Positions 1 to 63,004 of a stretch of 64,000 nt of DNA are shown here, piece after piece. Positions within the stretch are counted from its first letter, which is position 1. The number at the start of each line of letters is the position of its first letter. The DNA is from Zygnema circumcarinatum SAG 698-1b. Its lineage: Eukaryota > Plantae > Zygnematophyceae. The notes beneath the pieces were generated by a model. That model ran no database searches and was not told the DNA's origin. It saw nothing but the letters and a program-made list of their open reading frames with translations. Made by a program: the position numbers and the translations under genes. Location: NCBI GenBank assembly GCA_037447605.1, contig CM074804.1:1860001-1924000 (forward strand), in the 5' to 3' direction.

Positions 1-228
1 TCTTTCACGACCTCAAGTCGGGAAGACTCTCGTAGAAGGCTCTCGTATCCTCGTCGTCCCATAAGGGGTCGCCAGGTGGCACTTCGCGTGTGCCCGTAAC
101 CCCTCCGCCCCCCTCCGCCCCTCCGCTCATGCGAGTGAGATGGTCATCTTCCGGCATTTCAGGGGGCTCTTTATCCAAGGCTTCCGCTAGTCTGCAGAAG
201 GAGGAAGGAGGGACAGTGAGAGGGGGAA

Positions 229-284
<56 letters not shown>

Positions 285-3200
285 GGGGAGAGAGAGAGTG
301 AGCGAGTCGAGTGCTTTTACTAATCTGCAAGATACTTAGAGAACAACAGTCAGAGAGGGAGGGGAAGGAGAGGGGGGGAGAGAGGAGATAACGAGAGAGA
401 GATGGAAAAAACAGCGGAGTGCAGGATCATCATAAGTATTTGGAAAGTTGGTTTCTAGGGCTAGGAGCTTCCGCTAATCTGCAAAAGGAGAGCGGAAGGA
501 CAATGACGGAGGGGAGAAGAAGAGGAGAGAAAGATAGAGAGACACGAGACCTTCAGCTAATCTGCAACATCCATAAGGAACATCAGGCCGAGAGGGATTA
601 CGCGAGGAGAGTGAAGGAGAGAGCGAGCTAGAGGCCGAGAGAGAGAGAGAGAGAGAGAGCACAGAGGGAAGCGAACATACGAGGTGACAGAGCGGAGCAG
701 CTGATCGTACGACTTTCGAAGTCGCTCATAAGCGGAAGAGACCTCCTCCGCCAACTCCCCTCTCACAGCGAGCAGTCTCGCGATGGTTCGGTCCTGATCG
801 ACCAACGCCTGCACATGGCCCGTAATAGAACTCTTCTCGGCTCAGGAAAGAAACAAGAGAACGATTATTGGCAAGCAAAGAACTGAAGGTTTCAGAATTC
901 AGAATTTTTTATGTGGGATTTGCGGGTTATGTAGGATTGTCCAACTTAGGAAAGCTAGCCTATTCTAGTCGCATAGGCTTAAGCAAGCAAACAATACACC
1001 CTGAGGGATTTAGAAGTTTGAAGAGTTAAAGAGAAGGGCCGCACCTCATGCTCTGAATGCAGTAAGGCCACTGAAGCATCATAAAACGCAGTCACTATTT
1101 TCATCAGTTGCCGTTTTTGTTCCGTCGTAATGCTCAGATCTGCATACACCTGCACCCTCGAAATGCATACACACACAACTCAAATCTGCAAACTATTTAT
1201 CACACGGTAAAACTGTAGGATATGTTTTTCTATTCTGAAAAGATTCTGTTACTTTTGATATATCCGTGACGAACCCAAAACAAAATAAAAAAAAACGAAT
1301 TTGATATGTTCTCCTAAACTTCAAATTTTTTTTCGCTGTTCCAGACCGTGGATCGTTACAGAACTTCATTTCTAAACTTCCCCAGAACATTCTTCAAAAC
1401 CTTCCAAAACCTTCCAAAACCTTCAAAACATTTCTTAAAACCCAACAAGTCCAAGGTTTGCTCTCTCCCACCTCTGCATCTGCTGCAGTGACTGGCAGCC
1501 CCAGCATTGGCCTCCCATATCTCACAAAAGTGAGCACAAGGGTAATGCTCGCATGCGCCGCCTCTCTGTCCTTCTTACTCAGCTGCTCCGCATTGCCCAC
1601 CTCCTTCACCACTCCCACTACCACTCCCGCATCTTCAAATACTCCGCAGAGGTACAATTCGCAGAGTAGACGGAGGGTGCTTCTTTTGCGCATAGCACGC
1701 GCTGTGGTGCTGCCACCTGTCCCTCCGTCTAACAGGTCTTCTGCAGCTGCGAGGGAGGCAGCAGCTTTTCCAGAGGGAGGGGGGGCGAAGGCTTTGGCAA
1801 GGCTAGCAGTGAGGGAGGGGCCGAAGTCGCGGTAGCGCTGGTGGAGGAGAGAGCAGATCTGGAGGACAGAGAGGGAGAGATAGGGAGGGAGAGGGGAGGG
1901 GAGTAAGGAAGGGAGCTAAAAGGGAAGGCAGGAAGGGAGAGGAGGGAGAAGGGAGAGAGGGGCCAGAGTGACAGTATCGGTTGTGGAGTGGGGAAATTCT
2001 GGAGGATCGAGAGGGAGAGAGAGTGCGAGACGAAGAAAGTGTACTCAAAGAGGAGAGAATGCTCAAAGAAGAAAGAAGGGGAAGAAGAGAGGAGAAAGGT
2101 GGGGCCAAAGTCGCAGATCGCCGGAGGGGACAAGCAGATTTGGAAGATCGAGAGGTAAAGAGAGAGAGAGTGAGAGAGGAGAGAGAGGGAGAACGAAAGG
2201 GTGAGGGAGGGGACACAGGGGAAAGGGCGGGAGAGAGGAGTAGAGGGAGTGAGGGACATGCAGAAAAAAGTGGGGAGGAGAAAGGTCGAGGGAGGAGAGA
2301 GTGCCGACGACAGAGTGAGAGAGCGAAGGACGGAGAGATAGAGAAGTGGGGGAAGGGCGGAAGAGGAGGTGTGTGGGGGAGAAACGTGGGGGAGACGAAA
2401 GGGTGGACGAACAGAGACGGGCGTTGAAGCCGACAATGAAGAGAGTGGAGGGAGGGACATGAGGGAAAGACCGAAGGAAGAAAGTGAAGGAAAAAGAGAC
2501 AGGACAGGGGGGGGGGGGGGGGCAGCGAAGGAATTGAGAAGCGAGAAGTGAGAGTGGGACTCCCAAACCACTATCATGCACGAGAAAAAAAGAGAGAAAC
2601 AGGAGAAAAAAAAACGCAAACCACCTGCACAGCCGCATTTATATCGGCGCTTTTGAGCTTTGCATCGCAAATTGATGTGACAGCTTCGCTCGTGTATTTG
2701 CTGAGATTAACGGCCTGCAGCTCCTCCAACAGCGCCTCCCTCTGCTCCTCACTGAGCTGCCGCAGCTTCTTCACTACTGCGGTATTCCGTTTTATGCTCG
2801 AGTCCAGGCCTCGCAGGGAAGCCGCATCTGCATATAATAACAGGTAAGGGAGCAGGACCAGTAGCTCTTAAGGATTTTTAGGTTTTACTAGTTTCTTAGG
2901 GGTGCCGACTTGAGATGTTTGAGTTCATGCAGACGGTTCATGTGTTGGAGTTTCAGACTTGAAGTGCATGGTATTTTTAGGGTTTGAAGCTTTGCGAAGA
3001 TAGGGTAGACAAGAAATAAGTCTAGCAAGTTAGGAGCTTTCTTAGCAATCGTTTGAAGCAAAATATTCACTTATTCAGTCACTTTTTGTTTGGCTACATT
3101 TCGTTAGAGTGAGGAGAGAAAAGAGAGATGAGTGGACGTGATGGAGTGTGAGGAGAGAAGTGAGGGTAAGGGGAAGGAGATGTAAAGAAAAAGAGAAGAG

Positions 3201-3964
3201 GGCGTTGGAGAGTGAGAAAGAGAATGAAGGAGAAAGAGGAGAGGGAGAATGTGTGAGCTCACCCATAGGCTGGGCCTGCAAGTTGCTGCGTCGCAATGTT
3301 CGGCGGGCCTCCACCAGTTTTTGAGCCTCCTCCGCTCTCGCAATTCCCTCCTGCAAACCTCAGAACCAAATTAAATTAAAAATTAAATAAATCAAAGCGC
3401 TAACTCTACCGGTTTCCCTTGAATAGGTCAAAGGGAGGAGAGAAAGAGAGAGAGGGGGAGAGGGAGAGGGAGGAAAGGTGGAGACAGAGAGTGGCGGAAG
3501 ACACGGGACCAAGAAAGGTTCAAGGAGTGAGAGAGAGAGATGGGGAAGCGAGTGAGAGAGTGGGGGGAGAGGTCGAGCGAGAGCCTAAGCAGATGCAAAG
3601 AAAGAAAGGCTCGGAAGGAAAGGACGAGAGGGACGACCTCGCGAGACAAAAAAAGGAAACTGGCACACTCTGAATGAATGAACGAGCAATTAAAAATAAA
3701 GAAAGAACTAACTACAAAATAAAATGAATAAATAAATTAATATTCTGAATAAAGTAACCATGCCGCAAAGCCTGAGCAGCTAGCCCCTAACCCTAGCCCT
3801 AACACTAACCCTGACCCTAACCCTAACCCTGCCAGCAATACCTCCTCCTCTTCGCGGCTCCTCCCCTCCGGCACCTCCCCTCCCTCCCCCTCCGCCCGCC
3901 CCGCAGGCTCCATGGCGCTCCCTACCGCGTCCTCCTTGCCGCCCTCTGCAGGCGCGGCAGCCAT
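1..3964 (-). CDS. UPF2: Regulator of nonsense transcripts 2 (UPF2, MIF4G-domain NMD factor), 5' portion; the gene continues beyond position 1
   Basis: GT-AG exons 3964-3842, 3350-3263, 2827-2625, 1858-1472, 1149-1045, 808-681 and 191-1 splice in frame. Peptides LDSSIKRNTAVVKKLRQL, VNLSKYTSEAV, AAVQICSLLHQRY, KRSTLRLLCELY and LWDDEDTRAFYESLPDL match the UPF2 N-terminus/MIF4G-1 as I recall it. Confidence 0.95.
1865..2560. repeat. Representative long polypurine/polypyrimidine intronic tract; many similar ones occur across the window
   Basis: About 700 bp almost entirely G/A on +. Similar tracts at e.g. 6400-6700, 9720-10050, 23455-23760, 25130-25470, 28790-29030, 31540-31960, 36030-36370, 41380-41580 and 47650-47900. 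Confidence 0.95.
3785..3830 (-). repeat. Degenerate TTAGGG-type telomere-like array at the 5' end of UPF2 intron 1
   Basis: About 7 CCCTAA-like hexamers on +, starting ~10 nt after the GT donor at 3841. Confidence 0.8.
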
Positions 3965-14400: not shown

Positions 14401-15570
14401 ATTTGGGTCCCAGATTTTCAGTTTCCAAAAAGGGCAGAGTGGGTCCGTAGAAACCCTAAAATCCTGGAAACCTTAAAGTCCGTAGAAACCCTGGAACACC
14501 GTTAACGTCGGAAAGTCTTGAACCCTAAATCCTAAACCCTCAGTTCAAATTTCCAACCTCCAACTCTAAAACCCTAAATCCTGAAAAATCCAAAACCCTA
14601 AAGCCCCAAAATCCTTAAACCCCAGAACCCTAAAACCCCAAAGCCCTAAAACCCCAAAACCCTAAAGCCCCAAAACCCTAAAACCCCAAAACCCTAGAAC
14701 CCCAAAACCCTAAAATCCCAAAACCCTAAAACTCCAAAACCCCAAACCCTAGAACTCACCTTCTTCCCACCCACGCCCCATATGAGCTTCAAAGGCCGCA
14801 GATTTTTGGTTCCGCTGATTAAATCTCCAGACTTATTTTTTCCAGAGCCAATAAGGGCCTCCGCTGTAATTTTTTGCCTTTTTTTCCGTTTTTTTTCGGC
14901 TTCAAGCGCAGCCTTCTGCTCGTCCAGCCACTCCCTTTGAAGTCGAAAAAGATAAAATTCCTTCGCTTTTTCCACGCGCAGCTTTCCGCCTTTCCATGTG
15001 GCGCCGTTGTACTGAAAATCGGAAATAAAAACAAAAAAAAAGGGGGACGGGAAATAATTACAAAATTGGTTCGATTCTAAACATCTCAAAACCCTAAACT
15101 CTCCTCAAAATTGATTTCCTGAGGTTTTAGCCTTTTTTCGAAATTTAGATTTTTTTTCGGGTCCTATATTCCTCTATGTTTCTGAACTTTGAAGGCTCCG
15201 TAATTTCTGGGGTTTTAGGGTTCAGTTACAAATTTCACGGTTTCCGGATCCTGCTTTTCGGGGTTCAGGGCGGCCCCTTTACCGCCGAGATGCATTTTTT
15301 GAGGCTGCCCGGCCCCGCTGGCAGAAAGTCCACGTAGGCAAACCCTTTGCAGGCGTCGCCCCCCTCCGCGGCCGCCACGACCTCCACGCCCGCCACGTGG
15401 CCGAACGGCGCGAACCGCGCCGCCAGCTCAGCGCCGGACAGGCCCCGCGCCGGCAGGCCCCCCACGAATAGCCGCACGGGCCCCGCCATGGCCCCCATGC
15501 CCACCATGTCCTCCATGCTCATGGCCTCCTCCATGCCCACGCCCCCCATGCCCATGGCCTCCATGGCCAT
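11455..15570 (-). CDS. ROS3: Nucleolar RRM protein, ROS3/NOL8-like
   Basis: Five exons (about 15570-15283, 15011-14760, 14237-13756, 13506-13417, 13035-11455). RRM VRLFVGGL...KGFAYVDF followed by YNGATWKGGKLRVEKAKEFYLFRLQREW, TGKHKRSF, WIQKASWKSLV and C-terminal CAFMRT, matching conserved ROS3 blocks; long acidic/lysine-rich centre. Confidence 0.88.
14452..14752 (-). repeat. Degenerate telomere-like array (AAAACCCT/AAAACCCC on +) filling the 5' part of ROS3 intron 2
   Basis: Roughly 20 or more 7-10 nt units, densest at 14570-14752, beginning immediately after the GTGAGT donor. Confidence 0.85.
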
Positions 15571-20801: not shown

Positions 20802-33721
<12,920 letters not shown>

Positions 33722-62851: not shown

Positions 62852-63004
62852 ACTGGTCGGCAACCAGTCGAATGGTTGTTTCGATCCGGCGGCACTGGTT
62901 GGCAACCAGTCGACTGGTTGTGAACCAGTGGCATCCACTGGTTGGCAACCAGTCGAATGGTTGTTTCGATCCGGCAGCACTGGTTGGCAACCAGTCGAAT
63001 GGTT
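62852..63004. repeat. Palindromic tandem array (42-43 bp period, 3.6 copies) upstream of POLH
   Basis: Units start at 62852, 62894, 62937 and 62979; core ACTGGTTG-G-CAACCAGT; perfect 18-bp palindrome CAACCAGTCGACTGGTTG at 62903-62920. Confidence 0.9.

Follow-up and report, generated by a model that had tools for sequence, protein, structure and literature searches.

Intron gain by tandem genomic duplication, the Rogers model, has reportedly been documented by Gao & Lynch in 2009 and by Hellsten et al. in 2011. More generally, tandem duplication is an established process by which introns are created or reshaped (reviewed in PMC3443670; Drosophila cases in PMC2891723). Here we describe a related situation in the alga Zygnema circumcarinatum SAG 698-1b, in the 5' part of a gene for UPF2, a core factor of nonsense-mediated mRNA decay (NMD). 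The gene lies on the minus strand at the start of a 64,000-nucleotide stretch (contig CM074804.1 of assembly GCA_037447605.1, positions 1,860,001 to 1,924,000), which we call the window and to which all coordinates below refer. Its intron 6 contains, upstream of the acceptor that is joined to exon 7, three degenerate copies of that acceptor together with the exon bases that follow it. In known feedback circuits of NMD factors, the mRNA that is subject to decay still codes for the complete protein. The feature that makes it sensitive lies in the 3' untranslated region (3'UTR): in mammals this region is long, and in plant SMG7 and Barentsz it contains an intron (PMC3711448).

We consider it probable, with moderate confidence, that the intron/exon boundary underwent tandem duplication at least twice, in nested fashion, that the copies in intron 6 are what is left of these events, and that the three upstream sites, here termed decoys, are used little or never and have no dedicated regulatory role.

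Four related acceptors in UPF2 intron 6

In the sense of the gene, and with a slash marking the intron/exon boundary, the productive acceptor reads CTGCAG/ACTAGCGGAAGCC, base 191 being the first of exon 7. The same intron holds TTGCAG/ATTAGCTGAAGGT at 561, TTGCAG/ATTAGCGGAAGCT at 478 and TTGCAG/ATTAGTAAAAGCACTCGAC at 324. An earlier note, made from the letters of the stretch alone, had given the coordinates and sequences of the real acceptor and its three copies exactly as we find them. Below, the four sites are labelled X1 (561), Y1 (478), X2 (324) and Y2 (191).

The feature is real and exceeds what chance would produce. All three decoys share the core TTGCAG/ATTAG, and the 11-mer TTGCAGATTAG has exactly three matches in the 64-kb window, every one of them within intron 6, against 0.05 expected; three matches were reached in none of 100 shuffles. 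A 17-nt family pattern allowing up to three mismatches picks out, across the window, the four members and one unrelated site. The word spanning the exon-7 boundary scores 14 against its own intron but at most 7 against the five other UPF2 introns. TGCAG is the pentamer that ends five of the six real acceptors in the gene, and internal occurrences within its six introns are limited to the three decoys and a single site in intron 4 (the five introns other than intron 6 amount to about 2.2 kb). Further into the exon, from +6 to +19, the copies at 561 and 324 both agree with the real exon in 7 of 14 positions, a figure equalled or exceeded by only 2.7% of random intronic 14-mers. The earlier note had added that the 324 copy differs from the exon mostly at synonymous positions. 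Numerically this holds, with six of eight differences at synonymous-capable sites both there and in the 561 copy, but the excess is statistically marginal (hypergeometric p = 0.055).

The copies are not confined to the core. Each comprises a whole 3' splice-site module, made up of a branch-point-like motif 22-27 nt upstream of the acceptor (CTGAT, TCATT, CTGAC and CTCAC), a pyrimidine tract, TGCAG and exon-derived bases. The intron also falls into two halves that can be aligned collinearly; their landmarks follow the same order, and the single gap, of 50 nt, lies in a CT microsatellite. The local score of one unit against the other is 33, where shuffles reach at most 18.5, first-order Markov resamples 31.5 and the equally CT-rich introns elsewhere in the gene 18. 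The repeats are thus adjacent, direct and collinear, and include both the splice signal and flanking exon bases. The sense strand of intron 6 is 78% pyrimidine, and a CT-rich intron does inflate alignment identity. Chance resemblance in low-complexity sequence nevertheless has a negligible probability and we regard it as refuted, given the number of matches to an 11-mer that is not of low complexity, an alignment of units that scores above all controls, and the gap between cognate and non-cognate boundary scores.

The gene extends over the first 4 kb of the window and runs past the window edge at position 1. In tblastn comparisons, exons 2-7 are collinear with the UPF2-type proteins P0002, P0003 (from Mesotaenium), P0020 (land-plant-like) and P0025, at 40-66% identity. 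Pfam finds three MIF4G stretches in each of P0002, P0003 and P0020, whereas it detects the Upf2 domain in P0003 and P0020 but not in P0002; plant proteins named UPF2 by their sources are among the homology matches. This collinear similarity to proteins with three MIF4G domains and the Upf2 domain identifies the gene, as judged from sequence, as UPF2. Domain and structure searches with the window's own sequence used single exons, each of them short, and yielded a MIF4G match at E = 0.12 in Pfam, which does not reach the cut-off, and a match to human UPF2 (4cem) at E = 0.82 in the PDB; exon 6 was joined to each alternative start of exon 7 only for reading the frame and stops. The sequence is not human, its closest relatives being streptophyte and land-plant UPF2 proteins at about 50-55% identity. 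A HMMER search of the full library with the exon-4 piece gave a best identity of 56%, a search starting from Mesotaenium UPF2 found no protein closer than about 54% to the window, and a word search with exon 4 returned distant fragments only. There was no match in a word search with the exon-6 read-through open reading frame (ORF), in an exact look-up of the neighbouring intronless ORF or in a metagenome scan for the end of exon 6.

Homologues continue across the SVTS/LAEALD junction without a break, reading ...LLRNVTS/LAELLDKEPP in Mesotaenium, ...ITA/LAEALDMQPP in P0020 and ...VSS/LAESLDKQPP in P0025. This uninterrupted reading marks 191 as the productive acceptor. The intron itself is found at the identical codon and phase (TC/N, then LAEA(L/M)D) in Wolffia australiana (L001) and in a plant-like Logan genomic contig (L002). 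Since position and phase are shared with these two loci, the intron is ancient and older than the lineage considered here. Near-copies of the intron's own acceptor are absent from both the Wolffia and the Logan introns, each of which belongs to a distant UPF2 (about 50-65% protein identity). The copies thus appear to be specific to the Zygnema lineage, as far as these two distant loci can tell. With its codon and phase shared by both loci, the intron predates the duplication, which makes this a case of intron extension and not of intron gain.

Proposed duplication history of the intron

The earlier note had offered, as one of two readings, that the copies are fossils of repeated acceptor duplication that made the intron grow. 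This reading is well supported by the two collinear two-acceptor units, by the age of the intron and by the absence of copies from the Wolffia and Logan loci, and so is an origin by tandem duplication straddling the boundary. The pattern of similarity among the four sites is informative here. Overall identity is 66% for the pair X1-X2 and 61% for Y1-Y2, while cross pairs reach 51-58%. The similarity of Y1 to Y2 stops abruptly around +12/+13 of the exon, +13 being a mismatch, and that of X1 to X2 extends beyond +25.

From these observations we infer the following order of events. The ancestral intron would have been short, roughly 119 nt, which is the present distance from the donor to the first acceptor. 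A first duplication, of a segment from about -33 to at least +19, would have copied the full 3' splice-site module with some 19 nt of exon, so giving an upstream X and a coding downstream Y. A second duplication would then have taken in X and Y together, in a block of about 190-240 nt whose right edge lay near +13 of the exon, leaving the order X1, Y1, spacer, X2 and Y2. Slippage in the CT microsatellite may have added further length, and a spacer of about 60 nt would have ended up between the units. Altogether, the intron would have grown about fourfold, from around 119 nt to 489 nt. Since the flanks are 66% (X1/X2) and 74% (Y1/Y2) identical, the duplication events should be old, unless slippage has inflated the divergence.

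Such duplications across the boundary would be tolerated because only the most downstream acceptor continues in the reading frame. As long as that last copy is used the protein would remain untouched, so that the duplications can be fixed and the intron is simply lengthened. Most likely, to judge from the sequence, the copies have no function beyond that lengthening.

Two other origins were considered and set aside. Duplication of the whole intron, including the end of exon 6 and the donor, would predict a source for the spacer at 466-405, but nothing that matches this segment significantly is found in 780-640 (the end of exon 6 with its donor), in the upstream region 1500-681 or in exon 7. 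A dispersed repeat or mobile element carrying an acceptor is disfavoured by the restriction of the family, within the window, to intron 6.

Table 1. Features of the UPF2 locus, in window coordinates
Feature	Position	Strand	Remarks
UPF2 exons, approximate	3964-3842, 3350-3263, 2827-2625, 1858-1472, 1149-1045, 808-681, 191-12	minus	
UPF2 exon 6	681..808	minus	encodes ...YERLRKSYDQLLRSVT and the first two bases (TC) of a Ser codon; from tblastn with P0003, P0020 and P0002 and from splice contexts
UPF2 exon 7	12..191	minus	encodes LAEALDKEPPEMPEDDH...PLWDDEDTRAFYESLPDL; donor GT at 11-10; from tblastn
Intron 6	192..680	minus	489 nt, phase 2; donor GT 680-679; productive acceptor AG 193-192
Duplication unit 1 (X1 + Y1)	467..660	minus	collinear alignment with unit 2; repeat families D3, D5
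Duplication unit 2 (X2 + real site Y2)	180..415	minus	50 nt longer than unit 1, from the CT microsatellite
Inter-unit spacer	405..466	minus	not CT-rich; includes the TGA TGA at which the 478 isoform would stop
(CT)n microsatellite (sense strand), between X2 and the real acceptor	232..306	minus	(GA)37.5 on the plus strand; Tandem Repeats Finder
Decoy X1 core TTGCAG/ATTAG	557..567, first 'exon' base 561	minus	CTGAT branch-point-like motif about 22 nt upstream; weak tract
Decoy Y1 core TTGCAG/ATTAG	474..484, first 'exon' base 478	minus	followed by CGGAAGC as in the real exon
Decoy X2 core TTGCAG/ATTAG	320..330, first 'exon' base 324	minus	reads SLVKALD; CTGAC branch-point-like motif about 26 nt upstream
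Productive acceptor CTGCAG/ACTAG (Y2)	187..197	minus	exon 7 starts at 191

Possible use of the decoy sites

Neighbouring acceptors are 83, 154 and 133 nt apart. Read in the frame of exon 6, the isoforms from 324, 478 and 561 would gain 133, 287 and 370 nt, respectively, and run into TAA at 173-171, TGA at 432-430 and TAG at 476-474. The earlier note was therefore right that all copies lead to premature stops, and that the 133 nt added at 324 shift the frame into a TAA, although as much would be expected of any intronic sequence. The stops at 476-474, 432-430 and 173-171 lie 462, 418 and 159 nt before the exon-7 donor (12/11), in each case further than the 50-55 nt generally taken to trigger NMD.

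The pyrimidine content of the 25 nt before the acceptor (-25 to -1) falls from 92% at 191 through 84% at 478 and 68% at 324 to 60% at 561, and, read directly from the sequence, about 120 nt without an AG precede the productive acceptor. Since 191 has the strongest and longest pyrimidine tract as well as this AG-free approach, it is expected to dominate, and 478 would be the likeliest site of leakage. In any transcript that did leak, 159-462 nt would separate the stop from the following exon junction. Such a transcript would be a textbook substrate wherever intron-based NMD operates, and NMD would be expected to remove it.

Several observations weigh against the view that the copies are idle relics of duplication. 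The core TTGCAG/ATTAG is perfect in all three decoys (11 of 11 positions) despite flanks that are only 66% identical between X1 and X2 (Fisher p = 0.019), and in simulations a perfect run of at least 11, placed anywhere but covering the AG, has p of about 0.04. This core identity hints at constraint on the decoys. They also match the gene's TGCAG acceptor consensus perfectly and so look competent. Lastly, the head-to-tail junction between the units is not clean, being interrupted by the spacer of about 60 nt (466-405) with no matching source nearby, although this segment could be filler DNA or a later insertion.

The same perfectly conserved cores within diverged flanks would be accounted for by regulated unproductive splicing, in which the decoys would be maintained as genuine alternative 3' splice sites and an adjustable fraction of the UPF2 pre-mRNA would be turned into premature-stop transcripts. 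UPF2 dosage would be set in this way, and the choice of site could be made by a splicing factor such as pyrimidine-tract-binding protein acting on the CU-rich tracts. The decoys do have the local TGCAG consensus, branch-point-like motifs and pyrimidine tracts, the three stops satisfy the rule of more than 50 nt before the junction, and intron-based NMD is present in plants and requires UPF2 (PMC3711448). We regard this explanation as unlikely all the same. The signal of conservation is only modest, and it suffers from ascertainment bias, since it was for their intact cores that the copies were noticed; the decoys are missing from the two other, distant UPF2 loci; and premature stops come with any intronic extension. 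More doubtful still is the stronger proposal that selection keeps the decoys as a 'splice sink' for UPF2 dosage, and that arrays of duplicated acceptors may be a recurrent, evolvable throttle on output in this alga.

The other reading put forward in the earlier note was an NMD autoregulatory loop, in which the level of UPF2 would feed back on itself through decoy isoforms that are NMD substrates. By the position of their stops the decoy isoforms would indeed be such substrates, and mammalian NMD-factor mRNAs including that of UPF2, as well as plant SMG7 and Barentsz, are NMD targets (PMC3711448). The logic of the loop is weak, however, because the decoy isoforms all encode truncated UPF2. Each would end in the linker after the first MIF4G domain, so the NMD-sensitive mRNA would not encode a functional factor and stabilizing it could not restore UPF2. 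Equally, degrading an unproductive isoform leaves the productive mRNA unchanged unless UPF2 alters splice choice, which nothing suggests, and no UPF2 circuit in plants is given in PMC3711448. We therefore consider an autoregulatory loop very unlikely.

We attach scarcely any probability to a positive role for the decoys, as extra landing sites for U2AF and U2 that would help to define the intron or the downstream exon without being ligated themselves. The conserved cores would fit, as would the branch-point-like motif and pyrimidine tract that each decoy possesses, but the idea is purely speculative, and equally CT-rich introns such as the 766-nt intron 3 lack internal TGCAG and are presumably spliced. 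The duplication reading set out above, with decoys that are probably silent or nearly so, is the one we retain.

Nor does RNA structure appear to hide the decoys. The fold of the whole intron is no better than that of shuffles (z = 0.72), and the real site and the decoys cannot be told apart by structure. On the minus strand, the 478 decoy (459-503) and the real acceptor (172-216) each sit in the loop of a CUUCC.../...GGAAG hairpin, at -11.5 and -11.8 kcal/mol, respectively. Neither of these 8-bp hairpins is better than shuffles, and they are probably a by-product of a CT tract adjoining GGAAG. A poison cassette or in-frame micro-exons were also rejected: a single donor-like GT is present (AAG/gtctcg, which would define an 11-nt frame-shifting exon), and no exon that would keep the frame comes with a credible donor.

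Of the six introns of UPF2 that lie in the window, intron 6 shows the boundary-copy signal strongly, intron 4 weakly and the others not at all. At the end of intron 4 and the start of exon 5 (1133-1193, minus strand), the sequence tagttTGCAG/ATTTGAG has its G at position 1186, with the real acceptor (1150) following 36 nt downstream. Nearby, TTTGCAGATTTGAG matches TATGCAGATCTGAG from the interior of exon 5 at 12 of 14 positions, and GTGTATGCATTTCGAG (1174-1157) resembles another degenerate copy of the start of exon 5. If the acceptor at 1186 were used, translation would run at once into a stop (ATT TGA). The signal in this intron is weak, with a score of 9 against at most 7 for non-cognate introns. 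Pyrimidine tracts are poor at the acceptors of exon 5 (1150-1175, minus strand; 48% pyrimidine in -25 to -1) and exon 6 (809-835, minus strand; 40%).

A habit of the window as a whole was looked for by scanning for near-copies upstream of every AG, and rejected, as this found only satellites, telomere-like arrays and the intron 6 family. The telomere-like repeats are of the GGGTTA/TTAGGG type in UPF2 intron 1 (3785-3830) and of the AAACCCT(A) type in arrays at 14440-14760. A tandem repeat at 62859-63004 has a unit of about 42-43 nt with an inverted core (GGCAACCAGTCGA / TCGACTGGTTGCC). On the plus strand at 25313-25378, ACCGAGCTGAGGTAAA occurs twice, 50 nt apart, and has the look of a donor duplicate in a very G-rich, intron-like stretch. 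As evidence of donor-side duplication this repeat (25313/25363) was dismissed, since it lies inside that stretch and is not a boundary copy.

Comparison with known systems

Two classes of splice-site arrangement can be set aside. NAGNAG and other short tandem acceptors likewise offer more than one acceptor per exon, but the 3-nt spacing of the former is not found here: the UPF2 sites are 83-154 nt apart, have separate branch-point-like motifs and tracts, and give products that are frameshifted or stopped instead of differing by a single codon. Recursive splice sites have AG/GT at the boundary, whereas the decoys read CAG/ATTAG.

Alternative splicing coupled to NMD in the genes for SR and PTB proteins resembles the present case, in that splicing to an alternative site brings in a premature stop, with more than 50 nt between it and a downstream junction. 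The UPF2 decoys differ in being known from sequence only and in their absence from two distant UPF2 loci. With the autoregulation of NMD factors, the locus shares its gene, itself a core NMD factor, but those circuits work through a 3'UTR feature and an mRNA for the full protein, while the candidate NMD substrates here would encode a truncated one. If the decoys did turn out to be both used and regulated, they would reveal a level at which a core NMD factor was not previously known to be controlled. Irrespective of this, the intron is a natural test of how the spliceosome in the plant lineage chooses among four near-identical acceptors that differ mainly in the strength of their pyrimidine tracts.

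The closest parallel is with intron gain by tandem genomic duplication. There, as here, a short local duplication contains splice signals, the outer sites are used, the mRNA is unchanged and the duplicate becomes intronic. The classical event, however, duplicates an exonic AGGT and produces a new intron, whereas in UPF2 the duplications would have straddled, and lengthened, the 3' end of an existing ancient one. Complete decoy acceptors have also been left behind, and at least two events appear to have been involved, the second nested around the first. The locus would thus offer a clean and datable example of intron lengthening, in which duplications across a 3' splice site are invisible to the protein while the last copy is used, and so accumulate. 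We therefore view it as a probable instance of a known process of intron change, the difference being that an ancient intron seems to have been lengthened at its 3' end by two events, one nested around the other, with whole decoy acceptors left in place.

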